Below, in pieces: positions 1-39,259 of a stretch of DNA of 64,000 nucleotides (position 1 is the stretch's first letter; the number at the start of each line of letters is the position of its first letter). Below the pieces are notes generated by a model. It ran no database searches, was not told the DNA's origin, and saw nothing but the letters and a program-made list of their open reading frames with translations. This DNA comes from Monocercomonoides exilis PA203 (lineage: Eukaryota > Protista > Preaxostyla): contig LSRY02000003.1 in NCBI GenBank assembly GCA_001643675.2, positions 1 to 64,000 of the forward strand. Reading direction: 5' to 3'. The translations under genes and the position numbers were made by a program.

Positions 1-3000
1 CCTCCCTAACCCTAACCCTAACCCTAACTCCTAACCCTAACCCTAACCCTAACCCTAACCTAACCCTAACCCCTAACTCCTAACCCTAACCCTAACCCTA
101 ACCCTAACCCTAACCCTAACCTAACCCTAACCCTAACCCTAACCCTAACCCTAACCCTAACCCTAACCCTAACCTCCTAACCCTAACCCTAACCCTAACC
201 CTAACCCTAACCTAACCCTAACCCTAACCCTAACCCTAACCCTAACCCTAACCCTAACCCCTAACCCTAACCCTAACCCTAACTCTAACCCCAACCCTAA
301 CCCTAACCCTAACCCTAACCCTAACCCTAACCCCTAACCCTAACCCTAACCCTAACCCTAACCCTAACCCTAACCCTAACCCTAACCCTAACCCTAACCC
401 TAACCCTAACCCCTAACCCTAACCCTAACCCTAACCCTAACCCTAACCCTAACCCTAACCCTAACCCTAACCCTAACCCCTAACCCTAACCCTAACCCTA
501 ACCCTAACCCTAACCCTAACCCTAACCCTAACCCCTAACCCTAACCCTAACCCTAACCCTAACCCTAACCCTAACCCTAACCCCTAACCCTAACCCTAAC
601 CCTAACCCTAACCCTAACCCTAACCCTAACCCTAACCCCTAACCCTAACCCTAACCCTAACCCTAACCCTAACCCTAACCCTAACCCTAACCCTAACCCT
701 AACCCTAACCCTAACCCTAACCCTAACCCTAACCCTAACCCTAACCCTAACCCTAACCCTAACCCTAACCCTAACCCTAACCCTAACCCTAACCCTAACC
801 CTAACCCTAACCCTAACCCTAACCCTAACCCTAACCCTAACCCTAACCCTAACCCTAACCCTAACCCTAACCCTAACCCTAACCCTAACCCTAACCCTAA
901 CCCTAACCCTAACCCTAACCCTAACCCTAACCCTAACCCTAACCCTAACCCTAACCCTAACCCTAACCCTAACCCTAACCCTAACCCTAACCCTAACCCT
1001 AACCCTAACCCTAACCCTAACCCTAACCTAACCCTAACCCTAACCCTAACCCTAACCCTAACCCTAACCCTAACCCTAACCCTAACCCTAACCCTAACCC
1101 TAACCCTAACCCTAACCCTAACCCTAACCCTAACCCTAACCCTAACCCTAACCCTAACCCTAACCCTAACCCTAACCCTAACCCTAACCCTAACCCTAAC
1201 CCTAACCCTAACCCTAACCCTAACCCTAACCCTAACCCTAACCCTAACCCTAACCCTAACCCTAACCCTAACCCTAACCTAGTTTGAACCCTAACCCTAA
1301 CCTAACCCTAACCCTAACCCTAACCTAACCTAACCCTAACCCTAACCCTAACCCTAACCCTAACCTAACCCTAACCCTAACCTAACCCTAACCCTAACCC
1401 TAACCCTAACCCTAACCCTAACCCTAACCCTAACCTAGTTTGAACCCTAACCCTAACCCTAACCCTAACCCTAACCCTAACCTAGCTTGAACCTAGTTTG
1501 AACCCTAACCCTAACCCTAACCCTAACCCTAACCCGAACCCTAACCCTAACCTAACCCTAACCCTAACCCTAACCCTAACCCCAACCCTAACCCTAACCC
1601 TAACCCTAACCCTAACCCTAACCCTAACCCTAACCTAGTTTGAACCTAGTTTGAACCCTAACCCTAACCCTAACCCTAACCCTAACCCTAACCCTAACCC
1701 TAACCCTAACCCTAACCCTAACCCTAACCCTAACCCTAACCCTAACCTAACTAACCCTAACCCTAACCCTAACCCTAACCCTAACCCTAACCCTAACCCT
1801 AACCCTAACCCTAACCCTAACCCTAACCCTAACCCTAACCCTAACCCTAACCCTAACCCTAACCCTAACCCTAACCTAACCCTAACCCTAACCCTAACCC
1901 TAACCCTAACCCTAACCCTAACCCTAACCCTAACCCTAACCCTAACCCTAACCCTAACCCTAACCCTAACCCTAACCTAACCCTAACCCTAACCCTAACC
2001 CTAACCCTAACCCTAACCTAACCCTAACCCTAACCCTAACCCTAACCCTAACCCTAACCCTAACCCTAACCCTAACCCTAACCCTAACCCTAACCCTAAC
2101 CCTAACCCTAACCCTAACCCTAACCCTAACCCTAACCCTAACCCTAACCCTAACCCTAACCCTAACCCTAACCCTAACCCTAACCCTAACCCTAACCCTA
2201 ACCCTAACCCTAACCCTAACCCTAACCTAACCCTAACCCTAACCCTAACCCTAACCCTAACCCTAACCCTAACCCTAACCCTAACCCTAACCCTAACCCT
2301 AACCTAACCCTAACCCTAACCCTAACCCTAACCCTAACCCTAACCCTAACCCTAACCCTAACCCTAACCCTAACCCTAACCCTAACCCTAACCCTAACCC
2401 TAACCTAACCCTAACCCTAACCCTAACCCTAACCCTAACCCTAACCCTAACCCTAACCCTAACCCTAACCTAACCCTAACCCTAACCCTAACCCTAACCC
2501 TAACCCAAACCCTAACCTAACCCTAACCCTAACCCTAACCCTAACCCTAACCCTAACCCTAACCCTAACCCTAACCCTAACCTAGTTTGAACCCTAACCC
2601 TAACCTAACCCTAACCTAACCCTAACCTAACCCTAACCCTAACCCTAACCCTAACCCTAACCTAACCCTAACCCTAACCCTAACCCTAACCCTAACCCTA
2701 ACCCTAACCCTAACCCTAACCTAACCCTAACCCCTAACCCTAACCCTAACCCTAACCCTAACCCTAACCCTAACCCTAACCCTAACCCTAACCCTAACCC
2801 TAACCCTAACCCTAACCTAACCCTAACCCTAACCCTAACCTAACCCTAACCCTAACCCTAACCCTAACCCTAACCCTAACCCTAACCCTAACCCTAACCC
2901 TAACCCTAACCCTAACCCTAACCCTAACCCTAACCCTAACCTAACCCTAACCCTAACCCTAACCCTAACCCTAACCCTAACCCTAACCTAACCCTAACCT

Positions 3001-3109
3001 AACCTAACCCTAACCCTAACCCTAACCTAACCCTAACCCTAACCCTAACCCTAACCCTAACCTAACCCTAACCCTAACCCTAACCTAACCCTAACCCTAA
3101 CCCTAACCC
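1..3109. repeat. Telomeric array (CCCTAA)n, i.e. TTAGGG on the minus strand, with CCTAA/CCCCTAA variants and seven 11-nt CCTAGTTTGAA-type inserts
   Basis: Direct tandem hexamer array at the start of the window, in C-rich orientation as expected at a left chromosome end; it stops at ...CCCTAACCC|AGTACTT. Confidence 0.99.
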
Positions 3110-6100
3110 AGTACTTCCCACGAACATACAGCGAATATTTCCTTTGTACAAAATTGAAATTTTCTTCTTTCCAATTTTTGTTATCAGTTGTTAGTTATTT
3201 CAATTCATCATTTATTGAATATTCATCCATTTTTGTTTATCAACATTATTTGCAATAATGATTCATGTTCATTATCCCTTATCCAGTATAATAAATGTAA
3301 TTATTCTTTCCAATTAGTATTGATTGTTTTCTGAGGATATTAGTGTGAAAGTTTTCTTTCATTTTAGAGTATTCATTTGTTTTCCAGTTCTGTAATTCAC
3401 TATAATTTCTGTGCATAAAATTTGTACCATTCGCAATTATGAGTCAAGATATTCATTCAGCTGCAAAGAAAAATTATTAATAATACAAATAAATTGGCGA
3501 AACTTTCAAAAGAAACATACAAAACATGTAATTTCCACTTTCTGTTCATGATTCAAATAGTTCATTTCACGCATTATCGTTCTGCAATATTCTTGTCGAA
3601 TTTGAAATTCCAAAAAATATGAATGTTTCAAAATGGACCACTCTACGATAAAATGCATTCCATCCTTCAGAATGAATCCTTCTTTCCAGTTTTTGTTTCA
3701 ATAATGGAAATTAAAAATTTTTCATTTGAAAATATTGTTTTCTCATAACTTCATTTGTATTTCTTTATTAATCAAAACCACTCATTTTCGGAATATGATC
3801 TAGCAAGAAATATAATTCAAAAATGAGCTCAAACAAAGAAGACACTGTTTGCAATGATGATGCAACAATCCCAACGTCCAAAGAGTTGCTTCAATTCATT
3901 GATAATTTTTATGATAGTTATCGCAGGAATAAAAGTTTGCCTTGTTGTTTTTTTCACTGAAAATAATTGACTTTCATCTTTTTTATTTCTCAGTTGTTGA
4001 ACCGCATGAAATAATCGAAGACGAATCTGAAGAAGATAATGAATTGATGCCGAAAGCACAGGAAAGGAAAAGTTCCAAGTTGGTTCGAACTGCATGGCTT
4101 GGAGAAGAAGATGAAACAATTGGAGGAAGCGATGAATCAGACGTAGAAAATGTAATTTCAGCATTAAAATTAACGAACAGAATTTCGCGAAAAAGCAGTT
4201 CAAGGAAAAGCAGTTCTCAAAAACACACTTCCGTAGAAAACAATTCATCCAACGCTTGTGCAGATAATTCAAGTGTATCTTCTGAAGAATTTCATCGAAT
4301 CAAAATTGGTAAAAGCTTCAACATCGTTGAAGAAGAATCCAATGATGGAAGCGAAAATGAGCATGCTTCAGAAGAAGATTTGACAAGTGATGAACACGTA
4401 AGTCAGGAATCAGAATTTGCTGTAAATGAAACATTTCAGCCGAATTATGAAACAAGTCAGTCGATAACAACAAACAAAAGAAGGAAGGTAGATGAGTCTG
4501 ATTCAGAAAAAGACAATCAAGAGATGCCTTATCATTCAAGTTTCGAAAAGGATACGAATGATTACGTTGAGCCAAATGAAGTAAACTTGCTGTCGTGTGT
4601 TCAAATTGTTGATGGAGCAGATCAACCAGCTGATTCGGAGGAGCGTGATTTTCGAAAACTGATAATGGAGGAGCGTCTTTTCATGAAAAAGAAAATGGAG
4701 GAGCATTATAAAAGATTGAAGTTCTTCAAAAGCAAAATGTTGGAGGAGATGCATTTCATTGAAGAAATGAGTGATAACTATTCCAAAACGCAACATGAGT
4801 TTGATAGCTCAACAGAAGAGATGACAAAGGAAAAGGATTGTTGTACAAAATTCGTTGAAAACAAAACGAAATCATCTGAGAGAAATTCCAAAGAAACATC
4901 AAACAGTTGCGTACCACAAGGAAACGATCAGAAAAAGAAACAGGTGTTAAATGCAGCGCAGTTGAGAAAAGAAGCTTTAACTCCTAGAGATTTATCAACC
5001 AATTTCTCTCAATTGGATAGCGTTGAAACTGGACACAAAGACGAAAGAACGGAAAGTGAAAGCGCGGATTCTGAAGAGAAACTTGTTATCGGAAGCGAGC
5101 GTTACGAAGACATGAATCAAACGTATGAGCAGCTGGATTTGCGACTTGAAAGGGATCGAAACCAACCAACTTTCATGGATGCTGCGCTGGAATCGGCAGA
5201 TAGAAAAAAACTGAAGGAGTACTGCTTATTACCACGACAATACTCCCAGTCAACATTAAGAAAGCACAACTGGGTGCTTCGATTGTACGATTATTTTGCA
5301 AAAGATTTAGATTTTAAACCATTTCCCATTGAAATTGAATGTATTCGTGGTTTTTTACGTTTTTTGTGTAAAGACTGTCATTATAGTGTTGGTTCTGTAC
5401 AATCTGTTGTTGTTCCATCTTTAAAAAGAATTCAAACAAAAATGTTTAATGAACAAATAGATCAAAAACTTAATGATGGAATAAATTCTGTTGTGAGTGA
5501 ACTAAGAAGGAATAAAAGCCTTAAACAAAAAGGCGATGGAAAAGAACCATTAGTCACATTTGACGTAAAATATTTGATTAACAGTATTCCAGATTATTCA
5601 GAATTCAAAGCAGAAGATGCATCGTTATTTCTTTTTGCTTTGCATACTGGTTCACGAGCTGTAACTTGTGGTGGAATTAGATTGTGCGATATACGAAATG
5701 TCATAATCGAAGAAGATGGAACAATATTCGTGAAAATAAGACAAATGAGAACAAAAGGAAAAGATAATTGGAATCATGTTGTGACATTGGAAAACCAGAA
5801 TGAAGAAGATGTTGATTTAGATGCTGTATATTGGATGAGAAAACATATTTTAAACAAATTCAAAATGGATTTGTTTGAGAAAGACAAATGGCCGGTTGAA
5901 GATGAAAGGAGTGATTTAATTTGGACAAGAAATACTGAGGTGATGAGGACGAGATTAAAGAAAAGATTGGATCAATCTGGATTTCCTTCGGAATCATTTG
6001 GATTTCATTCATTGAGAAGTGGATTTTTGTGTTCAGCTTTAATGAATGCAGGTTCAAACAAAGAAGAGAGGAATTCAATTTTGGAAACTTGTGCGATGGT

Positions 6101-7250
6101 TGCTGGTTGGATTCCATTTTCTTATTCACAAATGGCATATATCAAAAAAACTGCATCTCAAACAGTTATTGCTTCTCGTGTAATTATTGTCAACAAAAAC
6201 AAACCGAGAAAAGCATTAATTGATGACAGATTGCTGAAGATAGAATCTTTCCACGGATTCAAATTGAAATCACAATCTTGGAATAGAGAAATCATCTTCT
6301 CAAAGTTCAATCGTGAAATTGTGAATAGAATGAAATTATTAAGAGAAGGGAAGAAAAATGATCAAAGGACAAATGAATATTTATTCAGAAAGGGATTAGG
6401 AAAGTTTGCTGAGGAAAATGAGGAGTTGGAAGAAAAAGCGAAAGAAAAATACCTTCCAAAGTTGGAAAAAGCATCACCTTCGAGCTATTGTTCAATCAAA
6501 GAGCACATCAGAGCTGAAATAGCAAGAAAAGATATCATCAACATTTTGTTATTGGATCCAACTTGCGTGAATCAACATGTCGAGATATTCTTAGATTTTA
6601 TGAAAAAGGAAAATCTCATCGAAAGAGATATCAAAAAATACAATTGTAAGAAGATAAAAGAAAATCGAAATCGTATGATAATGGAAAAGAGAGAAAAGGA
6701 TTATCTAGGAAAAAGAATTAGAAAAAGGTGGTCAAAGGATGAGGATGAAATATTGAAAGAACACAAGGCAAAAGAAGAAAGTTGGGTGAAAATTGCCTCA
6801 TTTCTTGAAAACAGAACAGCTGGAGATTGCAGTGATCGATGGAGAAACATAAAGAAAAAACAAGAAAGAAAGAAATTGAATATTTAATAACTTTTATTTC
6901 TTTATTTCATTATTTTTATCAGCTTTTATTCTCTTAAAGTTTGTTATTTTTATCAAATTTTTTCATTTGAAATATTTTCAAAATAAGAAATTTCAAAAAA
7001 CATTTTTTGAAAAATAAAAAATTGAAAGTATTTTTTTTCTTCTTCATTCTCATTAATTGTTTTTATATTGCACAGTAATAGAAAAGAGTTTATGACTTTA
7101 TTAAATTGTTTTAATTCACTATTATCAGAAAAAAGCCTCAAAGGTTTTTGTCCAAAACCTTCATGGTTATTTAGCAAGGTTATTTTCTCAATAACCTTGA
7201 GGAATATGTCAAAAAACGAATGCCAAAAAGGTATTAATGCAAGTCTAGGC
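3110..7250 (+). mobile_element. Putative telomere-inserted tyrosine recombinase-Myb element (copy 1, intact)
   Basis: Left flank ...CCCTAACCC (3109) and right flank TAACCCTAACC (7251-7261) join in telomeric register. The unit holds one intact YR-Myb gene and two subterminal palindromes (7141-7161, 7175-7199). Confidence 0.65.
3823..6887 (+). CDS. Tyrosine recombinase with acidic N-terminus and C-terminal Myb/SANT (telobox-like) domain, ~1001 aa; predicted intron 3935-3993
   Basis: Catalytic motifs HTGSRAVT (R), RTKGK (K), FHSLRSG (HxxR), AGW and SQMAY (Y). Core-binding-like region YSQSTLRKH...FPIEIECIRGFLRFL. C-terminal RKRWSKDEDEIL...WVKIA...NRTAGDCSDRWRNIKK. ATG 3823 plus a 59-nt GT..AG intron joins in frame to the 3942-6887 ORF. 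Confidence 0.9.
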
Positions 7251-7261
7251 TAACCCTAACC
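7250..7261. repeat. Interstitial telomeric remnant CTAACCCTAACC between YR copies 1 and 2
   Basis: Two telomeric units in the same orientation as the terminal array, at the point where copy-2 homology begins. Confidence 0.7.
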
Positions 7262-7264
7262 TTA

Positions 7265-9040
7265 AGAACATGGAAACAAAGGCTATGAGAACATGTCGGA
7301 TGAATATGGCAAGCAAAATTTGAGACTTGATAAAGAAAGAAACAGACAAACACTGATGGATGTTGGATTGGCAAACGAAAAAAAACAAAATATAGCTGAG
7401 CATTTCCTTCATCAGAGGAAATATGAACAGTCAACATTGCATAAGCACGCATGGGTGTTGCAGTTGTATGACTATTTTGCTGAAGACATGGATTTCAAAC
7501 CGTTTCCAATGATGCTTGAGTGTGTGAGAGGATTCATTCGCTTTTTGGCTTATGACTGTAGATACTGCGTTGGTTCAATTTATGCTGTTGTCCTTCCCTC
7601 ACTGAAACGAATACAAGTGAAAATGTTTAACAAGCCTATTGATGTACAGCTGAACACAGAATTAAACCTCATAGTGAACGAAATGAGATGGGATAAATCT
7701 TTTAAACAAAAGTGTGATGTGAAAGAGCCGTTAATGACATTTGATGTCAAATTCTTAGTTCATAGCATACCAAATTATTTCATGTCAAAAGATGAGGAGT
7801 GCTCTCTTTTTCTTTTCGCACTTCACACCGGAGCCAGAGCCATCACATGCGGAAATGTGAGGCTCTGTGATATAAGACAAGTTAAAAAAGAAGATGATTC
7901 TGTTAATTTAAAAATTCGACTAATGAGAAATAAGGGAAATGACAAGTGGAATCACATATTTCTGCTTGAAAACCAAACAGAAGAAAACAGATCACTGGAT
8001 GCTGTGTATTGGATGAGACAGCACATTCTTCTTAAGTTTGGTGAGGACTTATTTCTTAAAGAAGAGTGGCCTTTGAAAGAAAAATCTGAAGAATTAATTT
8101 GGAGCTGGAGTTCAGAAACAATGAGAACCAGATTGATGAAGAGACTGGAGCTTGCTGGTTTTCCTCCAGAAAATTTCGGTTTTCATTCTTTTCGCAGTGG
8201 ATTCTAATGCTCTGCTTTGATGAATGCTGGTTCTAACAAAGAGAAAAGAAATTCAATTCTTGAAACGTGTGCATTTATTGCTGGTTGGATTCCATATTCA
8301 AGGTCACAAATGGTGTATGTGAAAAAATCTGTATCACAAAATTTAATTGCTTCTCGAGTAATAATGAAAAGTTCTGACAAGAGGAAAAAATCATTTGTTG
8401 AAAAGAAGTTGTTGAGAACAGAATCATTTCATGGGTTCAAGCTGCAATCAAACAAATGGAATGACGACATTATTTTCGTAAATTTCTATCATCAAATTTT
8501 GAACAAGCTGAAAAAGGAAAGAGATAGAAAGCGCAATTCAACGGATACGTGCATACACTTGTTTCACGAGTTCTTTCTCAATACTCAGAAGAGGAGCCAG
8601 TTTTGGAGGAGAAAGCGAAATTAAAACATCTTCCACTATTGGAGAAGAGTAAATCAAGTTCACACTTTCAAAAAAAACCTAATATGCGGAGTGAAATTGC
8701 GAGGAAAGATTTGTTGTTTATTCTGAAATTGGATCAGTCAAAATTGAATGAAATGGTTGAGATGTTTTGGAGTTTTATGAAAGAGAAAAACTTTGTCGAG
8801 AAAGAAGTGAAAACGAGAAATATTCAACGAAAAAATGAAAGCGAGACGATAATGAAATTAGAGAAAAGAGAAAAAGATAAAACCGGAAAAAGAAAAAGAA
8901 GAACATGTACAAAAGAAGAAGATGATATTTTGAAAGAACACAAAAATAAGGGAGAAAAGTGGATTGAAATTGGCAATTTCTTGAAAATAGAATTGCAGGA
9001 GATTGTTATGACAGATGGAGAAACATTAAGAAAAAAGAAA
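7265..9040 (+). pseudogene. YR-Myb copy 2: 5'-truncated, with a nonsense codon and frameshifts
   Basis: ORFs 7293-8207, 8217-8624 and 8549-9205 are colinear with copy 1 (HTGARAITC, FHSFRSGF*CSAL, AGWIPYS, Myb remnant). The acidic N-terminal ~420 aa are absent. Confidence 0.9.
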
Positions 9041-9403: not shown

Positions 9404-9983
9404 AAAAGTCGCAAGTTTATCAATCTGTTGGATTTATTAATCAAATCTTTTTTTTATCATTTTTGTTAATACATATATCACATTACTCCACGATGCAAAT
9501 ATTATGATGTGAAATTTGTTTTTCATAAAAATTCACATTTCGATAAAATATCTTGGACATATATCAAAAAATGATTCTAATTGTGTTTTGTTTTTGTTTT
9601 CCATTTTTATCATATTTTATTATTCAAAAATAATTTCACATAGATGTATAAGAATGATGAGCTTTTTTTTGATTAATAAAAATGAAATATTCTATTAATT
9701 TCAGCAATGTTTTGGAATAATTCGTTTTTGTCTTTGTGTTTATTAAAAAACGAACAATCAAATTTAAAAGTCAAACAGATAATAAATGATTTATCAACCC
9801 ATTTATAAATGTTTCGAACAAATTTTGATAAAATTGCAGCTTTCCATGAGCCAAACATGATATTTTTCAAAATTATCTTTTATTAATCATTTGAATTATT
9901 AGAAAAAACAGGTTACGGATTTATCAAAACCGACATTTTTTTAAATAAATCTCGTTAATGACAACCGCTCTGTACTAACCTAA

Positions 9984-10985
9984 TCAACATTAAATGTTGT
10001 GTGGTGGCTGGAGAAATTTTTGGTTCAGGAGTATGGTCTATCTCTTACAAATTTTGACAATTGGAATCTTGGAATATCGGGAAAACAGTTTTTTTGGGGG
10101 ATTAGAATCGGTGTAATGAGAGTCAGACTTCAAAAAAGAGCCAAACAAGCAGTGTACTCGGAAACCATGTTCGGATTTCATTCTCTTTGTTCTGGATTTA
10201 TCTGTTCTGCTTTGTTGAAAATCCAAAATAATCCTGAATTAAAAGAATCAGTTTGAGAAGTGACTGCATTTGTTGCAAAGTGGCAACAGGGAGGAGAAGT
10301 TCAAAGCAGATATGTCAAACTGTCTGAGAAAGCAACAATAATTGCAAATCGTCTAATGTTTCCAAATGATGTGATTGAATCTGATCAACTGTTTGATATG
10401 GACTCATCTGAGCCAACTGTTTATCACAGTGTTCAATCAAAAGCAAGTGAATGGAACATTCGGATGATCATAGAATCATTTAACACATATGTTTTGGAGG
10501 TGATATAATATTCTTGTAGTTTATTGTATTACCCATATTTGTTTGCAATAAAACTGAATAGGATGGCAGCAGAAAAATACATCAAAAGTGAAAATATAAA
10601 AAAGGAAAAAGGAGAGTCTGCATTATCAGCGACTCGGAAATATATTTGTCAACTATTAAATGATGAAAAGTTGGTTATTATTTTCGTCGCAGTGAAATAA
10701 TTGGAGCATATCAAGGAATATTTGAATGGAGACGTTTTATTGGATATCAAATCTGCAAAGGTGAGAACAAAACTGAGTGAAGAAAGAGAAATCAATCAAA
10801 TTACGAAAAAGAAAACCAGAATCAGATGGTCAAAAAAAGAAGATGAGGTCTTGATCGATGGGATCGAACAAAAGAAAACATTCAAAGAAATTTGTGCAGA
10901 CTTGCCTTTGCGTACATGGAACTCATGCAGAGACAGTGTGAGAACAATCATAAAAATGCAACAAAAAAAAACAATCAATGTATAA
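9984..10985 (+). pseudogene. YR-Myb copy 3: divergent and heavily 5'-truncated
   Basis: VVWWLEKF, FGFHSLCSGFICSAL, VAKWQQGG...QSRY, and Myb RIRWSKKEDEVL...RTWNSCRDSVR; interrupted by stops. Confidence 0.85.
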
Positions 10986-14689: not shown

Positions 14690-17600
14690 AAAAAAATCAA
14701 TTGTATTTTTTTTTTCTTTTCTTTCTTTTTTTTTCAGAAGGTTTCTCCATCTGTCAGAACAGTCTCCTGGCGTTCTGTTTTCAAGATGTTCACAAATTCT
14801 AATCCATCCAACTTTTTTATTTCTATTTTCTTTCAAAATATCGTATTCTTCTTTCATCCTTGTTTTTTTTCTTCTTTTTCGGTTTTTATCTTTTTTTTTT
14901 TTCAAGTTTTTGTTAAGTCAAACATTGTTTCTCAATATTAGCTTGATTTTATCTCACAACCATTTTTACATATTCTTTTCTTTCAAAAAAAGTCCAAAAA
15001 ATATCCACTGAATCATCATGACAAACAGGAATCAATTTCCAAATGAATATCAGATTTTTCCTCGCAATTTCACTCCGTGCATTTGATTTCATTTGAAAAT
15101 GTGATCTTGATTCACTCTTCACCAATAATGAAAGATGTTTCAATTTCGATTTCTTATCCAAAACTGGATCTTCTTCTGAATATTAAGAAAGAGCTCTGTG
15201 AAACAAGTGTATGCACGTATCTGTTGAATTGCGCTTTCCGTCCATCTTCTTCTTCAATTTGTTCATAATTTGTTGAATAAAAATTAAAAAAGTGTCACAT
15301 CATAATTCTTCTTCTGTGTCCGAAGTTAGATTCTGTGAAAATTTTATAATTGTTAACATTTTCTTATCAACAACTGACTTATTCTCCTTCTTATTTTTAA
15401 TGAAATTTCTTGTTGCAATTATTGTTCTTGTCGCAACTCGTTTCACAATTGTCATTTCAAATTTTTGAGAAACGGATCCACTCTGTTATCATTGCACATA
15501 TTTTGAATATAGCCGCTCTTTCCTCTCTGTGTGTACCTGCTTTTATTATTGCTGAGCACAGAAAACCACTCCGATAAGAATGAAATAAAAGTTCATCTGG
15601 AGAAAAACCTGCAAATTCTCATCTTTTTTTCAACCTCGTTCTCATTACTTCGGTTCCATCCATCCATTACAGTTTATCTCCATTTTCCTTCTCTGGCCAC
15701 AACTACTCATTATCAAAATCCAAATGAAATTTGTTCAGAATAAACTTTCTCAACCAATAAACAGCATCAAGAGATTTGTCTTCCTCAGATAGTTTTTCTA
15801 ATGTCACTGGATGATTCCAATTTGATGATCCTTTGCACCTCATTAATCGAACATTTACAAACACACTTCCATCATCCTCTTTCACAACTTTTCTAATGTC
15901 ACACAACCTTTCATTTCTGCACGTAATTGCTCTTGCTCCAACATGAAGAGTAAATAAAAATAACGATGCTTCCTCCGCCTTCCCCTCAAAGCAATCTGAA
16001 ATGCTTTCAATCAAAAACTTCACATCTTACGTTACAAGAGGTTGTTTCCCTTCTCCTCTATGTTTCAATGATTTGTCCCTTCTCAATTCCATTATTGTTT
16101 TATTCATTTCATTGTCGAAAGTTCTGTCAATTGGTTTGTTGAGCATTAAACATTGAATTCTTTTCAACGAAGGGATAACCACAGATTGGATAGACCACAC
16201 ACAGCATCTGCATTTATTTGCATAAAAATCTTTGAAATCCATTAAAAAATTCATTTTCCATTGGAAAATGTCTGAAATCAAGGGAATCTACAAATAAATG
16301 AAACAATCGCAAAATTCATGTGTGTTTTTTCAATGTTGATACTGCATAAACTCTTGATTTATTAATGTGCTTATTCATTTTGTTTTTATCAAGATTCTGT
16401 AATAACCCAATATTGTTGGACGATCATTTGAATTATCAGAAACAAAATGCTGCTTTTTGGAGATTTCTGACATATCTTCTTATCTTTGAGAACCGTTCTT
16501 TCTTTCTTCCATATTTTCATCTTCCCTCTCACCTGCATAAATATTTCCATCCTTATCGTCCAATATTTGTCTTTCATTTTTCTTAATGATGTTTCTCAAT
16601 CATTAGCTGTCAATTTCACTTTTTTGTGTCTGTCATATCAATTTTTGTTGATTAAAAATATTTTCCTTTCTTTGCGTTTTGTCCCGTATATACCTCTTCA
16701 GTAATGCTTTCATTCAACTCATCCTCTTTTGTCTTGAACATCCCACTTTCTTCCAGCACGATCCTTTGTAAATGTTGTTATTCTTGTGATTTCTTTTCAG
16801 CTAATTCTGCATCCAGCATTTTGAGAGTTAATAAATTATCCACCATTTGTTTATTCCTCCACTCTTGCTCCTCAGTTTCATCAATGCTGCATTTATTTCG
16901 ATATTTTTCTGTTTTCTTTGTTTGCGAAAAATTTATTATGTTGTTCATTCTGTTGAAAAAACGCTTTTCATTATTGTCTGTTTTTCAAAGAAAATGCTAT
17001 TCCTCGATTTGCCCATCAAAGGCATCCTCCTCCACATGTTGAACCTTATTTAGTATTATCCTCTTATTCTTCGTTTCTTTCTTCCAAAATGAACAGGAAG
17101 CATAGAATTGCTTCATTTTCAGTTTTCTTCAAACTGGACACTTGACACCCATTTGTGGGATACTCTTAAAAAGAAATAATTTCTTTTTGTTTCAGTGGAA
17201 AATGCAAAGAATTGATATTTGTTTTCAAGGTGCCAAATATCAAAATCAATTCTTTCTTTGATTGCTCATTGCAACAGAAATCAGTTCTTTCTGTTTTTGA
17301 TTCATCGATTTTCATCTTTTTTCAAATGGAAAATATGTCCTGTTATTGCGAGATCTTAATACATGGATAGTCATATTTTCATGAGTCTTTTTCTTCGTCA
17401 CTGTCTACTTCTCACTCGCTTTGTTCAGTCGTGAAGCATTAGAAGTTTTTTTCCGCTCATTTTCAGTGGCGTATCTGATGTTTGATTGGAAATAATTATG
17501 AATTTGTGAAGTGGTTTGGATCTTCTGTGTGTCTGTCACTATTAGCGCTTTCGTTAACAATTGAGCTTAAAAAAGAATTTCTTCTGGATTTTTAGAATGA

Positions 17601-18999: not shown

Positions 19000-19750
19000 A
19001 TTTGAAAAGATAAAGAAGCTGAAGAATTGGATAAACCGTATTTCGAAATTCCATCAAACTGGGATGAGTTTTTTACTGAATGCGGGATAGCAACAAAAAG
19101 GAAGACAAAATTACAAAAAACCTTAAAAAAAGCAAACCGTTAACATTACATCGATACACTCAACAATTTTCAATTCTTTCTCCTTCTCTCCATCGCAAAT
19201 ATAAATGGGAGGAAAAACTATACGTGTCATACGCCAAATTACTTAAAAGCCAACCTTTTCCAATAGAATCTTCGACAATTTCTTCATTCATTCAATTTCT
19301 CTTCATTGAATGTTTATATTCAATAAAAAGTGTTGAAAATGTCATCATTTCCTTTTTGAAATCGCAACATCTTCAACTGACAAAAAATTTGACTTTTGTT
19401 GTAATTTGAAACAAACAATTCGATCTTTTTTTTCTGTAAGGAAAAGCAGATGTTTCAAAAAAGAAGGCAAAGAAAAAATTGCAGCATTATTGGATGATGT
19501 AGCTTATGTAATAATAATTAACCATCCAAGCAAATTTTTTTTTTGATTCGGATTGTTCACTTTTTCTATTTGCAGTGGGTTGTGGAACATTGTTAATAAC
19601 ATGCGTCAAGGTTTTTCAGAAGTGCAAATAAAAGTTACAGTTTAGGATTCACATGTGGATTGCTTCCTGGTTGAAATTACAAAAAGAAGGCTAAAGTTCC
19701 ATCAAAATTCGAACCATTCAGTCACAATTGAAGGAAATATTGTTCATTTA
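19000..19750 (+). pseudogene. YR fragment (copy 5)
   Basis: KYKWEEKLYVSYAKLLKSQPFPIESSTISSFIQFLFIECLYS, followed by degenerate CSLFLFAVGCG and NHSVTIEG matching the copy-1 core. Confidence 0.7.
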
Positions 19751-20273: not shown

Positions 20274-23070
20274 TGAAGCATATACCGCAAGAGAGGAAGT
20301 GTGCAAAAAGATGATGAAACTGATGCAACACTTCCTCTCTCCCACAAAACAAAAAACTCCACAAACACATCACTCTTCTCTCCCCTTCTCCACTCCTCTT
20401 CGAAATAATTCTTATTTTTCTGAAATCTCAACACCTCACAAAACAACCAAAACACTCCTTCCAACACAAGAAATTAACTCTGCATCTGTAGAAAAAGAAA
20501 AAGTGAAATGTGAAAATGAAAAGGATGAAAAAAGAGAAGATAATTTAAATGAAAATAGTGACTCGGACAATGAAAGTTCTGATTGTAATTTGGGTTTTTT
20601 GGATTCTTCCGGTGAATCGGAAGAAAATGAATTTTGAGGAAGATGACATAGAAGAAAAAGCTCATTCAAGTATTGAAGAAAAGCAAGATGAAAAAGAAAT
20701 GGAATTGAAAATGAAATTATTGGACACGGATGTTTTTCATGACAGTGCAAAGAAAAGAAATAAGCACTTGATAGAAAGAGCTGATGTGTTATCAGCAATG
20801 ATAACTTCAGACAATACACATCAAAACAATTCCTCTGATTCATCTCCCTCTTCTACTACAACATTTTCATCCGCTTCTTCCTCCTCCTCATCCTCCTCCA
20901 CATCCTCCTCCTCTGCTACAACAACATCCACCTCTCAATCTCAACAATTGTATATTTCCCATGAGTTTCCCACGAAGATGTGCGCTGTGTTAATGAGAGT
21001 GGGGAAAGATGGTGCGAAGTTATACATGAAGATAAAAACACTATTGTCAAAAGCAACACAAAAAAAGCACTGTTGGGTGGAGAGGTTGCTTATTAAATAT
21101 GCAGAAGTTGTTGAGGAAAAACCATGGCCACTTTCACCAAATCTCGCATTCGCATTTGTCCTTTTCTGTGAAAAGGAATGCATGCATCCTTTATCATATA
21201 TTGGAAACATCATTGTACCTTTTTTGAAAAGTATAAATATTGAAAAAAGAGGAAAAAGATTAAATAGAAAACCAAACATCGCAATGAGAGAAGTCGTGCG
21301 TTGTCTTCGTTTCGCTAGAAATGTGGAAAAGAATGTAATGGAAAAGAACCAGCATTAATCAAGGATGTTTCAAGAATAGTTGAATTCAAACCTTCATCAC
21401 TGGAGTCCAAGAAGATGGAGGCTTCCCTGTACTTGGTGGCCATCCACACTGGGGCGCGGGCTATCACTTTGGCAAACGTGCATCTATCAGACATAACAAG
21501 AGTAATTAAATCAGAAAAAACAAAGAAATTTCTATGCATACTTCGACATAATCGAACAAAGGGCTCATCCAACTGGAGGCACGAAGTGACAATTGAAGGA
21601 TTGGAGGAGGAAGAAAGCGGAGATGATCCTGTTTATTGGCTGTCTGCTTATCAAAGGAAAAGATGTGTAACAACGTTATCAGAATGGATGGAAAAAAAGA
21701 GTGGAGCAAACCTTGAAGAACTGCTTTGACCTATCATCACCGACTCCATGCGCGAACGCTTCAAAACTCGAGCGGTTAATGCGGGCTATCCGAGGAGCCT
21801 CTTCTGCTTTCATTCTTTCCGCAGCGGCTTTATTTGTTCGGCTCTGAATAAATGTGGTGCAAAAGAAGAAAAGCAAAAAGAAATATTAGAAAAAACAGTA
21901 TTTATTGCAGGTTGGAAACCTTTCAAAATTCCTAATGCGGGTTACATCAAAAGCGTTGTCAAGCAAGCCATGATTGCTTCCAGGCTGGTTGTAATGATGG
22001 AAAGTGGGAGAACAAGCCAATTATTGATGAAACGCTTTCAGAATTACGAACATTTCACGGGATTGATTTTTCGTTCAAAAAAAAAATATCATAATGCATA
22101 TAAACACCTTGAAAAAGATTAAAATGAAAAATAAAAGCAATCTTTTGAATTGATCTTATTCTTCCAACGAAAAAGGAAAAGTTCAAAAAAAGTTGTTAAA
22201 AATTATGTTTGAATAAAAGAATAACGATGAGTGGTTTTCAAAAAAAAAATTAAGAAAATTCAAATTCAAAATGAGAAAAATCATAAATACATTGACAGAT
22301 TGAGAGTGCATGCCTGAGTTGCTAATGTTTTCATTACACATAATCTCATTGATGAGGAGGTTGTTGTTTCAGAATTAGCTTATGAGCTTTGTTCAAAGAT
22401 GAAAAAATGACAATTGAACAGGTCAATTGAAAAAGAACTCTCCATCGACTGTTGAACCAACAATTCAAATGAAAAAATTAAGGATAAAGGAGAAAAATGA
22501 AGATACATGTTTTGAATGAAATACAATGAACGAATAAAACAATTTGAAGATGTTGAGATTGATTGAAAATGAAAATGGAAAACTGAAGTTGTTCAAAAAT
22601 AATTAAAGATAAATAAAATTGGTGACAAACATTTTTTTCATATGTTTGAAAAAAGCAGTTTCGATGACAAGCAAGAATTGTCAATAAAATGAAAGGTGAA
22701 TTTCAAGAAGTCGCCTTTCTTAAATGACTAGCTTTTTCCAGACAAAGAAATGAAAAATGAATTTGAAGAAAACAAAGTATATTTCGAAAAAGTTAGAAAG
22801 AGAAGACAAAGAAGAAAAACACACCTTTAATTCGAATGGGAATAAAAGGAAAGAAAATGAACGAAGAGGAAAATGGATGAAGAGGACCACTTTGATGACA
22901 ATTTTGTTTCTGAAATGTTTTTAAAGTGGTAGCTCTTCAAGTCACGAAACATAAGACAAAAGCGAAGTAAAGACGAAGTTGAGTGTGCTCGAGTTGAAGA
23001 TGAAAAGAAAAAGGTGTGTTTGTGCAATGAACTGTCTTGCATATTATTGCCTTTGGCCATTCACAAATAT
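20274..23070 (+). pseudogene. YR copy 6: frameshifted, C-terminus decayed
   Basis: ATQKKHCWVERLL...PWPL, EASLYLVAIHTGARAITL, RTKGSSNWRHEVTIE, FCFHSFRSGFICSAL and IAGWKPF. The 3' end is approximate. Confidence 0.85.
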
Positions 23071-23219: not shown

Positions 23220-25617
23220 GGCATAGGTCTAAATTGTACCAGTAGTGAATATGATATAATTTGATGAATATTTGAAATATTATTGATTGTCATAATTAAT
23301 TAACACTGTACTATCAAAAAAATTTCATAAATTTTTAATTCAAAAAGCAAACAAAAATTTTTGATCAAACCCATAAAAATACTTTCATTTTTTCATTTTT
23401 TTATTTTATGAATGTATTTGAGCTATGTTTTGATTATTAACTGCATTTATTGTTTTGTTGTTTTTTTCATTTCATCTTCTTTTTAAAGAAAAGAACAAAT
23501 CAGAATATTGTTTTATATTTTCTTTGAATATTCAAATTGCAAGGTTTGAAAAGAATGCATTGAATAACATGTGAAATATCAAGACAATTTGAAAAAGTCT
23601 TCATTTATATTTAGAAATATTTTCTTACAAGAATTCAATATCACTCCGTCTTTCGAAAATGATATCCAATGCGAACTTGGCTTGTTGAAGAAGTCAACTC
23701 AGCTTTTATTCCCACTCCATTCCCATTCGCACACTCACATCCTTCAATTGTTGTATTCCACACCATAAATGTCTCTCCTCTCTTTATCCTCTTTGCCATC
23801 ACCACTTCATCTCCTGTTGTCCGATTCACATTTCGTATTGTCAAATTTCCAGAAGACTTTCTCCTGATATTGATTCTGTTGATGATAGTTCAGTGAACAG
23901 AGGTCGATTCGCTTTCATATTTTTTATCTCGACATCAACCATCTTTAGCCATGAGAAGAATGTCATAAACACAGATGAACATGTCACACATTCTCCACAA
24001 ACACTCTACGAGATCAAAACATCCTCCGGAGAAAGAGCCTCGCTCTCCACAGGCACCACAAATACGCTCGGTGAAGAATCTCTTGTCGCGTAGTGATCAA
24101 TTCCCACATGCCCTACCGCTTGCTGCCCGCTTGCCACACTGAACAGCGTTTTTGAAGATGAAGAAAGTGAATTCGTCCCAATCACACTTACTTCCTTCCC
24201 TTTCCCCAAAACAGAAATCTTCATAAATCCAAAATTAATTGTTGCTGTCTCTTCATTGCAATGATTCCCTTCCAACAGAGAAACCACTTAACTTGTCTGT
24301 GTTCTACTCCAATTGACTGCAATGTCAATGGCATGGAATGCAGTAATCTCATCCGTTTCGCACAACTGGTCTGTGCTGCTATCCGCTCACTGCGACAAAT
24401 CGGTTGAGAATCCCTCTCTTCAGCTAATCCTTCTTTTCCGTGTGCTGAACAGACCAGTTGCTTCCCGTATAATTGTATGCACAGCACGCCCTCTGTTCAT
24501 CTGTGTTTGTGGTGGAGCATTATTTGAACGGATTTCCTGTGCTCAAAAAAACATTGTAATAATCTGCAAATTCTAAATCATGCCCATATGGAATATTAGC
24601 AGAGCATTTGCATTCATGAAAGAAAAGGAAATAACAATAGCACCTATCAACTAGCCCTGTTGCTTGATTTGGATCCAGTCTCATTCCCCCACCTTGTGAC
24701 GAAGCTGTACAGGAGATAAACTGAACGCTCCTCATTTTGAATTGATAAGGAACAGTAGCCCAATACAGGCCTCCTCCATTTGATCCAGAAAGTGAGCATG
24801 AAGTGAAAATGCAGTCGAATACACATGCACTCTCTCCTCCTTCATTTTCTGCTTCAATGCATCCTATTCCTGAAACGTTAAAATTATTAAGATTAAGAAC
24901 ACCTCCATAGCTATTTGCTTTTCAATTCTGGAATTCACATCCTCTGATCTGAGCACACGTAGAAATTCAATTCACATATAACCCTCCTCCATATTGATTT
25001 TGTGCTGTACAGGCGTTGAACACATTATTTTCGATATCCACAAAATCAATTGATAGGCACATAATTCCACCTCCACAACTGAATGAAAAACAGTTATTAA
25101 ACAGACAATGTGAAACAGATAGTTCTCCATTTCCCTTGCTGTACATGAAAATAGCCCCTCCACTCGATTTTCCATCAGTGCACGAGTCGCTTTCTCCTGT
25201 TGTCTTCGATCCACCCCATTCTCACCTAATTAATTATTTTTCTTCATTTATAATTTAGTTCTCTGTTAAAAACTTCTAATTATCAAGCATGCATCATTGT
25301 TCTAATATAATTTGATCACAACCAACGAAAAGCAAATTTATGAAATAAAATCATTGAAACACGAAGAAATTTATTTTATGTGAACATTAATTCGGTTATT
25401 AACAATTTAACTGTCACAATACGTTTGTAAAAATAAAAAATGAAAAAAATAAAAGTGTTTTTATGGGTTTGATCATATATTTTTGTTTTATTTTTTAATA
25501 AAAGATTTTTGAAATTTTTTTGATAGTACAGTGTTAATTAATTATGACAATCAATAATATTTCAAATATTCATCAAATTATATCATATTCACTACTGGTA
25601 CAATTTAGACCTATGCC
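23220..25617. mobile_element. Non-autonomous TIR element with Merlin-like ends (GG...CC, 8-bp TSD) carrying host-gene cargo
   Basis: ~107-bp essentially perfect TIR GGCATAGGTCTAAATTGTACCAGTAGTG..., extending imperfectly to ~200 bp; TSD GTTGAAGG at 23212-23219 and 25618-25625. Confidence 0.92.
23640..25230 (-). pseudogene. Cargo: disrupted fragment of a Cys/Gly-rich beta-helix (pectin-lyase-like) repeat protein gene
   Basis: Minus-strand repeats such as SSGGAIFMYS, CLFNNCFSFSCGGGI, FNACTAQNQYGGGLY, FTSCSLSGSNGGGLY and FISCTASSQGGGMRL; multiple stops and frameshifts. Confidence 0.65.
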
Positions 25618-31600: not shown

Positions 31601-32080
31601 TTTTATCTTCTTTTGCGCTAACTTTTTTTGGCTTTGGATAAGGAACGGATGATTTTTTTTGGTGCAGCTGCTGAGCAAGATGCTGAAGAACTGTTTGTTT
31701 CACGCTCAAGCTCTGCTTCATAATGCTTTGGCTTTTTTGTCTTTCTGCTCCTTTTGCGGAAAACGGATTCATCCATCTTTGAATCTCCTTTTTCGCTGTC
31801 TTTATCATCTGTTTCACCAAACCATGCTTCTCGTATCAGTTTGGAACTTCTTCTGTTTTCGCCTCGAGCAACAAGTTCTTCATCTTCCTCTTCTGGCATA
31901 TTGGTGATAACAGACGGCTCAGGCTCTGGATAACAATAAAAAGAATAACGTGAATTATAACATGACAATAGAATGAATCAAACATTTGTTAACTGTTATT
32001 TTGGTGAAGATTTCATCAACAATGCTCTATTTTTCTTAAGAAATCGGTATTTCAACTTCTTCATTAACTTTTGCTTTTTC
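28620..32080 (-). pseudogene. YR-Myb family copy 7: strongly decayed, inverted
   Basis: N-terminal EEEDEELVARGENRRSSKLIREAWFGETDD matches copy 1 ESEEDNELMPKAQERKSSKLVRTAWLGEEDE. EASLFLYALHRGA*AMTCGGVGLCDIRNV at ~30050-30140 and IAGWNSF at ~29390. Intron at the equivalent position (~31928-31983). Confidence 0.75.
31030..31400 (-). repeat. Degenerate 30-bp (10-aa) tandem repeat, EEHxxxGGxx, inside YR copy 7
   Basis: EEHCADGADI KEHHIGGGVL EEECVVGGES EEHFNRGRTV EEHHIGKGGL VEHDSVCGDL..., about 12 units. Confidence 0.85.
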
Positions 32081-37589: not shown

Positions 37590-38399
37590 TAATTTGATCT
37601 TAATTTCTGACTTCTGACTTTTCCTTATATACTAAAAACAATTAATAAAATATGAAAAGTGGGTTGATTAAACTTATTAATAAAAAAAATGTTCGGGTTA
37701 AAAAAAATATTCGGGTTAATAAATCACCCTAATGAAATTTTTTATGAAAGTGAAACATATTCATTTTATATTTGCTATTTATCGAAAAATCTGAGCGTCA
37801 CAATTCTTCATTCAGTATCTCAACATCAAAAAAATTATCACTAATATACATTTTGTTATATTTTCTTTCCAACTGATACTTTTCATCTTATTCAGCTTTC
37901 GGAAAAAAAAAGTTGTTTCGTTATTTTTCTAAATTTTCTTTATCTTTCCAGATAACCAATTCATGTTATGTTTTTCTTTGAATAAAGAAATAAATGAAAA
38001 GAAACAAATGTTGAATTATAACCACTGATTTTAGTAATAATTATTTTTTTTATTATGATTCATTTCAAAAAAACAAACCCAAAATATAGTGAAATTGTGT
38101 TTAATTGAGTTATCTGATTCAAAAATCATTCTTCATTTTATAACAATGTGTTTTTTTCTTTTCAATAAATATCTTCAACAAACATCCATTTTATCGAAAT
38201 AATTGAGCCCATAACCACTTTGAAAAAGTTTAAATTTTGATCAAGAAAAACCAAAATCATTTATGAACAATTAATTTTTTTTTATAACTATTATCTGTTC
38301 TGATTTTTTTTATAAAAAAAGTGGAAAATTGATGAATGAGCTTTCAACGATAAAGAAAATGAATTACAAAGATTGTTGACGTAAAAAGAAATTAAAAAT

Positions 38400-39069: not shown

Positions 39070-39102
<33 letters not shown>

Positions 39103-39190: not shown

Positions 39191-39259
39191 TTTCCTTTCT
39201 TTTTCTGGCTGAACAAATACAATTTCCGAAAAGTCAGAAATAGAAAAAGCACTTATGAT

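Follow-up and report, generated by a model that had tools for sequence, protein, structure and literature searches.

Directly beneath the telomere array that caps the left end of one chromosome of Monocercomonoides exilis, an oxymonad, we identified a discrete unit of 4,141 bp (element E), which is predicted to encode a tyrosine recombinase of the Cre type carrying a Myb repeat at its C terminus. The reading that we prefer, and hold with moderate confidence, is that E is intact, was copied very recently and belongs to a family of Crypton-like DNA elements, not described before, which lives only at chromosome ends. Direct support comes from the discreteness of the units, their end-specific distribution, the short telomeric tracts at their inner ends, junctions of the erosion-plus-healing type, purifying selection and the recurrence of this layout in other genera. 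A recombinase fold, taken from a structural model, and motifs read from the sequence also support it.

The analyzed stretch (the window) comprises the first 64,000 nucleotides (C25:1-64000) of contig C25, a complete 2.55-Mb chromosome. It opens with a (CCCTAA)n array, read from the sequence at positions 1-3109 of the plus strand; telomere arrays of M. exilis measure 2-3 kb. Variant units occur sporadically in this array (TAGTTTGAA at 1280, 1436, 1494, 1636, 1647 and 2583; TAGCTTGAA at 1483). Element E follows at 3110-7250 (+), or from 3107 if the CCC is counted as part of it. Its outer (distal) end begins AGTACTTCCC and its inner (proximal) end closes with GCAAGTCTAGGC; with a slash marking the boundary, the left junction reads CTAACCC/AGTACTT and the right junction GTCTAGGC/TAACCCTAACC. 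The preliminary description of this DNA had pointed out a 4141-bp non-telomeric segment beside the telomere, and the segment is real: a second copy and breaks in unitigs mark both of its ends. In all 82 Mb of the genome this second copy is the only other close one; it is found at the right end of the contig (C25:2539124-2543265, minus strand). The two are 99.95% identical over window positions 3107-7265, differing by one 1-nt indel, and are unrelated beyond on both sides. The outer end of the right-end copy abuts satellite-like sequence via only 'CCC', not a telomere array. Kinship between the outer end of E and the neighboring satellite, both AGTAYTTYCCC-like, was considered and rejected because the alignment gave no support. 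Short-read unitigs from four DNA runs break at both boundaries of E. When E alone, without telomeric letters, was compared with the assembled contigs of these runs from one sample, its depth was roughly double the depth of long contigs, which fits a chromosomal copy number of two, and neither a circular nor a tandem E junction was seen in these contigs. Neither terminal inverted repeats nor long direct repeats were found at the ends of E.

Sequence reading predicts a first coding exon with its ATG at 3823 (3823-3934, +), a 59-nt GT(3935)...AG(3993) intron (3935-3993, +) that joins this exon in frame to a long ORF, and a main coding exon (3994-6887, +) within the ORF at 3942-6887 (981 codons). 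The predicted intron is present in both E copies. In the product of the main exon, an N-terminal region that is acidic and rich in Ser precedes the recombinase, which a helical linker connects to the Myb repeat; the protein searches used this exon-2 ORF rather than the spliced protein of both exons. The recombinase, with core-binding and catalytic domains (5247-6200, +), was recognized from an AF2 model (pLDDT 83.6), Foldseek and motifs. Foldseek against the PDB placed Cre at the top (E 5e-7, TM to target 0.65-0.72, about 340 columns covering both domains), followed by IntI, XerA/XerH and lambda Int. The catalytic-type residues are R572 (5655), K605 (5754), H689 (6006), R692 (6015), W723 (6108) and Y733 (6138), with roles assigned from motif order and not from residue-level superposition, and the R-K-HxxR-W-Y set is kept across 23 relatives at 30-60% identity. 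The Pfam profile PF00589 (Phage_integrase) scored below threshold (21.4-22.8 bits versus a cut-off of 27.1) and was matched at E<=0.01 in 5 of the 23 relatives, while the recombinase domain had no match when searched by sequence against the PDB and an NCBIfam search gave nothing meaningful. Judged from sequence, the recombinase is a divergent lineage within the tyrosine recombinase superfamily. Pfam detected no reverse transcriptase (RT) in the E gene, whose domains were recombinase and Myb only. Of eight pairs of paralogous copies for which dN/dS could be measured, seven gave 0.17-0.29 and one, near-identical, gave 0.78. An intact tyrosine recombinase with R-K-HxxR-W-Y and with neither RT nor terminal inverted repeats, as first described, was thus confirmed by the Cre fold (AF2/Foldseek), conserved motifs, Pfam and the repeat search.

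A single Myb/SANT repeat occupies residues 927-970 of 981 (6720-6851, +), with Pfam scores above the cut-off for both PF00249 (31.6 bits) and PF13921 (27.1 bits). In sequence, its helix 3 (DCSDRWRN, with VDCKDRWRNL as the family consensus) is similar to the telobox and also to the Reb1-type motif. In a phmmer search of the PDB, c-Myb R1, Trichomonas MYB21, CDC5/CEF1, SNAPC4 and Reb1 scored 22-27 bits and TRF1, TRF2 and Terfa 18-20 bits (E 0.009-0.03), with TRF1/2 at 18-19; a family profile ranked them alike. The domain had been described as a TRF/telobox-like Myb. The single C-terminal repeat holds, but a specific TRF/telobox type was not supported, since TRF1/2 scored below c-Myb, MYB21, CDC5, SNAPC4 and Reb1.

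Recombinase-Myb units were found at most chromosome ends of M. exilis and in hundreds of metagenome sequence clusters. Mapping of the copies genome-wide, suggested earlier as a check on end enrichment, gave at least 74 in M. exilis, and 39 of 74 lay within the first 50 kb of contigs compared with 6.1% expected (P ~1e-27); as a control, only 5 of 150 reverse transcriptases of this genome lay there. The units are 3-6 kb in size and carry a single gene, the orientation of which varies by family. One terminus of each unit is specific to its family and always borders a tract of telomere repeats, which in many families lies on the 5' side of the gene; the outer ends of different families have no common motif. 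Families have diverged to 30% identity within this one genome, and multiple stops make pseudogenes of many copies. Blattamonas nauphoetae shows a terminal array, then an element, then a 54-nt tract. Tracts were also present in five of seven groups of contigs with metagenome relatives, two groups having TTTAGGG-type units.

On its centromere side, E is followed by a short interstitial telomeric tract, TAACCCTAACC, of 11 nt (7251-7261, +; 12 nt with C7250), which is the only such tract in window positions 3200-64000, where shuffled sequences lead one to expect none. The tract of the right-end E copy is 16-17 nt long. Beyond the tract, DNA and protein comparison delimited an older unit, of family B, at 7262 to ~9981-9990 (+), of which the outer ~3.2 kb (5') is missing. 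It shows 58% protein identity to E and 89-92% DNA identity to full-length copies on C92, C34 and C76, carries one in-frame stop and closes with a 9-nt tract of degenerate sequence, CTAACCTAA. Farther in, tblastn located decayed recombinase-Myb copies on both strands (9990-10982 +, 14738-16408 -, 19179-19613 +, 20969-22080 +, 28886-30180 -, 31711-31947 -), which reach ~32 kb into the window. The claim that E is inserted in the telomere therefore stands only in part: telomeric repeats bound it, but on the right these are an 11-12 nt tract followed by a truncated relative and not an array.

This arrangement recurs. Over ~22 junctions, roughly 15 of them independent, the tract lies always on the centromere side with either gene orientation and measures 9-18 nt apart from outliers at 36 and 82 nt. 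Its length varies among copies with the same terminus (12 versus 17 nt for E, 11 versus 12 in another case, and 16 versus 17 versus 9 for family B). The inner neighbor is often an older truncated unit; inner units have lost sequence from their outer side whatever the gene direction, and a short tract and the next unit come after the cut (the family B unit of the window, C92, C37, L025 and the metagenome locus L044). C92 and C34 share 13.5 kb, a satellite array plus a family B unit, ending exactly at a tract; between loci L013 and L015, and likewise between L020 and L021, identity exceeds 99.7% all the way from the tract to where the 4.5-kb loci end; and in five pairs of copies besides that of E homology ends exactly at the tract, with 84-100% identity on the element side versus a background of ~55-63%. 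Because the tracts are 9-18 nt long although telomeres are 2-3 kb, the units were either joined at very short chromosome-tip tracts or survive only there. Insertion anywhere in a 2-3 kb array predicts long inner tracts, and none of the ~22 exceeds 82 nt, so this route requires an extra assumption of target bias or loss.

The inner terminus is conserved between E and family B, with the pattern TTWATG...GTCTnnG (7226-7250, +) directly before CTAACCC. Three telomere-like pentamers, the only ones in the whole of E, lie 55-85 nt from this end (GGTTA at 7165, GGTTA at 7178 and TAACC at 7192; 7165-7196, +), and family B has GGTTAC-N9-ATAACC at the equivalent place. On sequence grounds these pentamers are candidate protein-binding sites of the E/B clade only; such half-sites are absent from the outward-reading families and are therefore not a family-wide feature. 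As the junction sequences imply, and as the preliminary description had noted, deletion of 3110-7250 restores the CCCTAA phase, with a chance expectation of one in six and a boundary ambiguous by 1-3 nt. In-phase joining was compatible with the junctions of E and B, and with those of the Blattamonas unit and locus L023 under one boundary choice each, but locus L048 was off by one. Given this 1-3 nt uncertainty in the boundaries and the irregular arrays, we draw no conclusion from phase.

From these features we infer a circular intermediate, catalysis by the recombinase and a DNA target for the Myb repeat. The recombinase would excise or copy the unit as a circle, the junction of which would hold a few telomere repeats, and this junction would recombine with telomere repeats at a chromosome tip, so that the unit would come to sit between the growing telomere and the underlying sequence. 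Repeated terminal erosion, healing by telomerase and new additions could then build head-to-tail stacks with the youngest unit outside. The bias toward short tracts might arise if the elements prefer short, newly seeded or unprotected telomeres as targets, or if units with long inner arrays are quickly lost via recombination between the flanking arrays.

The same stacks could have been formed in other ways. The units might be subtelomeric blocks resembling yeast Y' elements that spread by break-induced replication, in which an eroded end invades a short interstitial tract elsewhere and copies everything outward; the recombinase-Myb gene would be cargo or act indirectly, for example by telomere trimming. 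We regard this as rather unlikely. Short tracts are expected of it, as homology is limited to the short tract of the donor. Truncated inner units with a healing-type junction (CAAACTAGG, then ~3 repeats) before the next unit also fit, as do the C92/C34 sharing that stops exactly at the tract and the near identity of L013/L015 and L020/L021 from the tract to the locus end. All duplicated units could have been terminal at that time, and indeed every duplication seen, possibly including that of E, also fits outward copying of a tip from an interstitial tract. A Crypton-type test gave copies with exact common inner termini and unrelated flanks, all at chromosome ends, and tip copying explains these too. 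It does not explain, however, why an intact recombinase is under purifying selection in dozens of diverged lineages, or why the association of recombinase-Myb genes with tracts recurs in other genera and in metagenomes. Moreover, homology of 9-18 nt makes invasion inefficient, and the right-end E copy of C25 meets its outer neighbor through 'CCC' only.

It is quite unlikely that the copies are instead a host gene family, a domesticated recombinase-Myb for telomere or subtelomere maintenance amplified like other subtelomeric families. Purifying selection and strictly subtelomeric location would suit such a family, and domesticated Crypton recombinases with added DNA-binding domains do exist, and WOC localizes to telomeres (PMC3212892). 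However, the many pseudogene copies with multiple stops, the divergence to 30% identity in one genome and the conserved terminus and tract that each copy has of its own, with homology stopping exactly there, do not suit it, and the catalytic residues are retained, unlike in the yeast Crypton-derived Cbf2 and Gcr1, which have lost the catalytic site (PMC3212892). Addition in trans through RNA, as by Athena/Coprina Penelope-like elements or HeT-A, would have a C-rich transcript end pair with the G overhang and be reverse-transcribed by the RT of another element or by telomerase. The outward-facing 5' end of E and B, the short C-strand tract that adjoins their 3' end, the 5' truncation of the family B unit, the abundance of RTs in the genome and a long A run in one metagenome relative agree with this mechanism, which is nevertheless very improbable: many families are reversed and have the tract on the 5' side of the gene, truncation is always on the outer side whatever the gene direction, the predicted intron is kept in both E copies, no RT lies in or beside the units, and RTs are not end-enriched. 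Finally, nanopore assemblies are error-prone at ends and all read data come from a single sample, but an artefact from chimeric long reads or mis-joined repeats is hardly credible when unitigs of four DNA runs carry E without differences and break at its boundaries, and dozens of ends, a second genus and unrelated metagenomes all show the same architecture.

To our knowledge, the mobile elements that specialize on natural chromosome ends are retroelements. A chromosome-end specialist family of DNA elements with its own Cre-like recombinase would be new. If the recombinase acts on telomere repeats, these elements would represent a new route by which genomes build subtelomeres, their stacked junctions would record telomere erosion, telomerase healing and recombination in a natural system, and the enzyme would be a candidate sequence-specific recombinase for TTAGGG-type repeats. 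A bolder proposal, which we consider unlikely at present, is that an overlooked and widespread clade of eukaryotic DNA elements builds and repairs chromosome ends without reverse transcription, its units being captured specifically by newly seeded or critically short telomeres and acting as a DNA-based counterpart of HeT-A/TART of Drosophila, both selfish and a back-up cap where ends have eroded. Capture might proceed by site-specific recombination, or by 'one-ended homing', with telomeres trimmed by the recombinase and the unit then copied by repair, outward from its short tract. The units also account for some of the 'unclassified' repeats that make up 35% of the assembly in the M. exilis genome paper, in which recombinase-Myb genes are not mentioned (PMC8767320).

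Among known systems, Cryptons (Goodwin 2003; Kojima & Jurka 2011, PMC3212892) resemble E in that the recombinase is the sole enzyme, without RT, terminal inverted repeats or LTRs, and often has an extra C-terminal DNA-binding domain. They are thought to integrate via a 5-6-bp sequence common to circle and target (PMC3212892), their short terminal direct repeats being regarded as this crossover sequence; around our units a direct repeat is present by default, because the flanks are telomere repeats. The E family differs in that its DNA-binding domain is a Myb repeat, in its restriction to chromosome tips beside telomere repeats, and in its stacking with a one-sided short tract. GCR1_C (PF12550) and DUF3504 (PF12012) had no Pfam match in E or 22 relatives, and on these Pfam signatures E falls in none of the Crypton groups F, S, A, I and V. 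CryptonV of cnidarians, as cited in PMC8869645, is likewise a tyrosine-recombinase DNA element targeting a simple repeat; in that citation its targets are microsatellites and not telomeres at true chromosome ends, with no mention of a fusion to Myb. Endogenous nimaviruses of crustaceans (Kawato et al. 2023, PMC10871703) combine a tyrosine recombinase with insertion between telomere-type repeats, residing in (TAACC)n, and their concatemer or episome junctions span the repeat tract. They are, however, viral genomes of 200-360 kb and not single-gene units of 3-6 kb, their recombinases have zinc-finger and SAM-like domains instead of Myb, and their (TAACC)n tracts are not shown as chromosome tips.

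The integron system (IntI, attI x attC) also uses a tyrosine recombinase for the sequential addition of circular units at one end of an array. The likeness is functional only, as integrons are bacterial, have one integrase for the whole array where here each unit has its own recombinase, and recombine at folded single-strand attC sites. Yeast Y' elements share tandem subtelomeric units with short telomeric tracts between them, one long ORF and end-to-end spread by recombination or circles, but they encode a helicase and not a recombinase, their tracts are 50-130 bp, and they form two size classes in place of dozens of diverged families. The telomeric retroelements HeT-A/TART/TAHRE, SART/TRAS and Athena/Coprina form head-to-tail end stacks with short telomeric stretches between units, truncated inner units and the youngest outside, as here. 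Unlike them, the E family has no RT, occurs in both gene orientations, keeps its predicted intron and is truncated according to position, not to the 5' end of a transcript.

The first 3109 nt of the window form a terminal (CCCTAA)n array at the left end of contig C25, which is 2,548,433 bp long in an assembly of 101 contigs and 82.3 Mb. The nanopore assembly of M. exilis contains ten telomere-to-telomere chromosomes of 0.86-2.54 Mb (PMC8767320). Non-telomeric DNA at 3110-7250, here called element E, follows the array directly; the left junction passes from ...CTAACCC into AGTACTT and the right junction from ...GTCTAGGC into TAACCCTAACC. E has no terminal inverted repeats and carries a single gene, whose main ORF (3942-6887) is joined in frame to a predicted exon (3823-3934) across a predicted GT-AG intron of 59 nt (3935-3993). 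One other close copy was found in a whole-genome DNA search, at the opposite end of C25 (next best match, 79% identical). The two copies are alike over window 3107-7265 and unrelated outside it; a 1-nt indel at 4405 sets them apart, and the only further mismatch is T/C at 7262, the first base past the tract. Four DNA runs of the source sample yielded unitigs that reproduced E and broke at both boundaries, and the unitig depth of E was about twice that of long contigs of the same run. The second copy with unrelated flanks and the unitig breaks bear out 3110-7250 as a discrete unit, as the preliminary description had proposed. No back-joined E (circle or tandem) was present among the unitigs of the four runs, contigs being unable to reveal rare forms.

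The right flank of E had been taken for telomere, and this reading did not hold. Only a tract of 11-12 nt lies there, unique within window 3200-64000 (shuffled sequence predicts 0), and beyond it stands a truncated relative, copy 2, whose protein is 58% identical to that of E and lacks the first ~380 codons. Decayed recombinase-Myb copies on both strands continue inward of copy 2 to ~32 kb. In the right-end copy of E (C25:2539124-2543265), the outer, telomere-side terminus is joined via 'CCC' only to non-coding 347-bp units and their tail and then to long telomere; the inner tract of 16-17 nt is followed by unrelated GC-rich DNA. This copy has an extra G relative to window 4405, and its N-terminal region would be frameshifted (longest ORF, 828 vs 984 codons). 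A homopolymer error in the nanopore assembly would explain the extra G just as well.

Several other features were recorded in the window. An inverted repeat of 188 nt (93%) encloses ~2 kb at 23220-23407 and 25430-25617, and further repeats, both direct and inverted and 85-227 nt long, lie at ~50-51.6 kb (50139-50552 and 51304-51638); both sets are possibly small non-autonomous elements. A long run of 9-nt period at 38353-39100, inside overlapping minus-strand ORFs (38364-39252) and with related stretches at 46774-46876 and 63589-63691, is probably a repetitive coding region of low complexity. Among the ORFs scanned (at least 200 aa), the first host-type family matches inward of the subtelomere are an intron-less ABC transporter of 1,418 aa with ABC_membrane and ABC_tran domains (44805-49064, minus strand) and a protein of 1,820 aa that combines TmcB-type TPR with a hemerythrin domain at the C-terminus (52589-58051, plus strand).

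A tyrosine recombinase as the only gene of E, with neither reverse transcriptase nor inverted repeats, was confirmed. In Pfam, the E protein gave a Myb repeat above cut-off at aa 927-970, a sub-threshold Phage_integrase match and no further domains. An AlphaFold model built from 23 relatives (pLDDT 83.6) suggests a Cre-like fold, in which both the core-binding and the catalytic domain match Cre recombinase (E-value 5e-7, TM to target 0.65-0.72); integron integrase, XerA/XerH and lambda integrase rank after it. The motifs TGxR, KG..W.H, HSLRSG, AGW and RY, which in E correspond to R572, K605, H689/R692, W723 and Y733, are kept across relatives of 30-60% identity. The dN/dS values among paralogous copies were 0.17-0.29, with the exception of 0.78 in one near-identical pair (dS 0.01). 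The proposed kinship of the Myb repeat with TRF and telobox proteins fared less well: c-Myb R1, Trichomonas MYB21, CEF1/CDC5, SNAPC4 and Reb1 scored 22-27 bits against the repeat of E and TRF1, TRF2 and Terfa 18-20 bits, and the family profile gave the same order. Helix 3 (DCSDRWRN in E, VDCKDRWRNL in the family consensus) resembles the telobox and also the Reb1-type motif. Given the generic score ranking and this second resemblance, the repeat is, as judged from sequence, a generic Myb repeat and was not filed as telobox.

A six-frame search of the M. exilis genome revealed at least 74 copies (184 candidates), which range from uninterrupted ORFs of 900-1,300 codons to pseudogenes broken by numerous stops. 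Enrichment at chromosome ends was found: 39 of the 74 copies are located within 50 kb of a contig's start vs 6.1% expected (P ~1e-27); for reverse-transcriptase matches, used as a control, the count was 5 of 150. Matches at right ends lie ~7-55 kb from the contig end (C25, C76, C34, C48 and C1), and those on C56, C51 and C45 appear to fit the same pattern.

The gene is oriented inward in E and in its closer relatives (at least 55% identity), with a short C-strand tract of telomere repeats at its 3' side. Many families of 30-36% identity have the gene reading outward, with a short G-strand tract ahead of its 5' side; in two loci (L014 and L029) a long terminal array follows the outward-reading gene. 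Inward-reading genes occur in other families as well (L022, L023 and L027; L026, 91% identical to L027, has no tract within its locus). The short tract thus lies on the centromere side in either gene orientation. Tract lengths were 9, 11 (five times), 12 (four), 13, 14, 15 (three), 16 (two), 17 (two), 18, 36 and 82 nt; terminal arrays in M. exilis are 2.9-3.9 kb, and telomeres have been measured at ~2.1 kb on average (PMC6759080). Copies of one family share the tract boundary on the element side and vary at the other boundary (12 vs 17, 16 vs 17 vs 9, 11 vs 12 nt), and in five copy pairs the element side is 84-100% identical while the opposite side is at background (54-63%). E and family B, the relatives to which copy 2 belongs, share a conserved inner terminus of ~25 nt. 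Telomere-like pentamers occur in E and B only 55-85 nt from the inner end, and are lacking near the terminus in outward-reading families.

Inner units are cut at their outer side. Copy 2 lacks ~3.2 kb compared with full-length B on C92, C34 and C76; on C92 an outward-reading gene beneath B is cut at its 3' end, and on C34 a remnant of 115 nt lies between two tracts. On C37 a unit, which continues in a 91%-identical relative on C45, stops at CAAACTAGG, followed by three repeats and the next unit; locus L025 has the same stop with a 13-nt tract, and in a metagenome gene a 17-nt tract truncates the 3' end. Copy 2 (from 7262) and a copy at C48:25138 (MONOS_13223), two independent truncated copies, have their cuts no more than ~15 nt apart, a short way upstream of the conserved recombinase core, and copy 2 has an in-frame ATG past the cut at 7293. 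The near-coincidence could be due to chance, to a site favoured by telomerase (CCCAAA in full-length B) or to the survival of short forms that still function. The variant TTCAAACTAGG (TAGTTTGAA on the C strand; TTCAAACTA, then GG, on the G strand) is sporadic in terminal arrays and is met again at sites where truncated non-telomeric DNA passes into telomere repeats, including where telomere caps a truncated satellite unit. It was recorded at window 1280, 1436, 1483, 1494, 1636, 1647 and 2583, at L019:3385-3396 and at the C34 left end (~2958). About 7 of 22 tract/flank junctions start with CTAACC followed by TAGT. From its sequence context, TTCAAACTAGG looks like a trace left by telomerase adding repeats de novo or reading through its template. 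The satellite, which is GC-rich and has a 347-bp unit, a tail containing a palindrome and an AT-rich part whose length varies, adjoins many telomeres, distal to the recombinase units and capped at differing internal points, as though its addition followed the same course as that of these units. At the right end of C25 (L036/L037, reverse-complement 3884-5165) it amounts to 2.3 units, and on C92 (3311-10714) and C34 (2957-11878) to more than 20.

The association extends to other organisms. A homologue in Blattamonas nauphoetae lies directly inside the terminal (CCCTAA)n array (1-1199), and a C-strand tract of 54 nt (6006-6059) marks the end of its unit. In metagenome contigs, relatives of 30-40% identity have tracts of 11-23 nt beside the gene in 5 of 7 groups, with stacked units in L044 and L048 and TTTAGGG-unit tracts in L045 and L052. 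Searching 1.84 billion representatives with a profile yielded 278 clusters at E-values up to 1e-30 and 782 up to 1e-10; many cover recombinase through Myb, and the named ones are only 'uncharacterized' M. exilis proteins. One relative occurs in three samples (L045-L047; ERZ28654170, ERZ27256838 and ERZ28655154) with a sample-dependent upstream tract, 22 nt with TTTAGGG units vs 11 nt of TTAGGG, and an A run of ~28 nt or more ~1.4 kb downstream of the gene. Another, P0136 (ENA ERZ1426852, a 7,498-bp contig), is a 2,064-aa protein with a ubiquitin hydrolase (UCH) domain and the recombinase. Peptidase genes occur in some Cryptons (Kojima & Jurka, PMC3212892).

These observations establish a tip-specific family of recombinase-Myb units, added to chromosomes in layers. 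Addition through an RNA intermediate is unlikely, because the genes occur in both orientations, the cuts follow position, the predicted intron is kept and no reverse transcriptase is associated with the units. By analogy with Cryptons and nimaviruses, the recombinase might integrate a circle via a telomere-repeat core; integration via a circle and a short core has been proposed for Cryptons (PMC3212892) and likewise for nimaviruses that dwell in telomere repeats (PMC10871703). If integration into kilobase arrays were random, ~22 inner tracts of at most 82 nt could not have resulted, and therefore the target would be short or newly seeded telomeres, or units between two long arrays would soon be lost.

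Alternatively, a short uncapped end may copy a chromosome tip from an interstitial tract, as yeast Y' elements do. This explanation remains in contention: it accounts for the short tracts with no added assumptions and is consistent with the 13.5-kb block common to C92 and C34. We nevertheless favour integration by the recombinase, or a hybrid in which the recombinase would make the template circle, because selection maintains a recombinase with its full catalytic set in dozens of diverged lineages and because its link with telomere tracts recurs in distant hosts. The earlier proposal of site-specific telomere integration is partly supported; the end-specific recombinase-Myb unit stands, and random insertion into a long array does not.

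Literature searches on Cryptons, tyrosine recombinases, Myb and telomeres, and on the two oxymonads, turned up no account of such elements, and recombinases, Cryptons and telomere-associated elements are unmentioned in PMC8767320 and the earlier M. exilis genome paper. The Pfam marks of described Crypton lineages, GCR1_C and DUF3504, are absent from every family member scanned. The family is best classed with the Crypton-like recombinase elements, and its nearest reported counterparts are CryptonV, which is microsatellite-specific according to the work cited in PMC8869645, and the nimaviruses that dwell in telomere repeats (PMC10871703).
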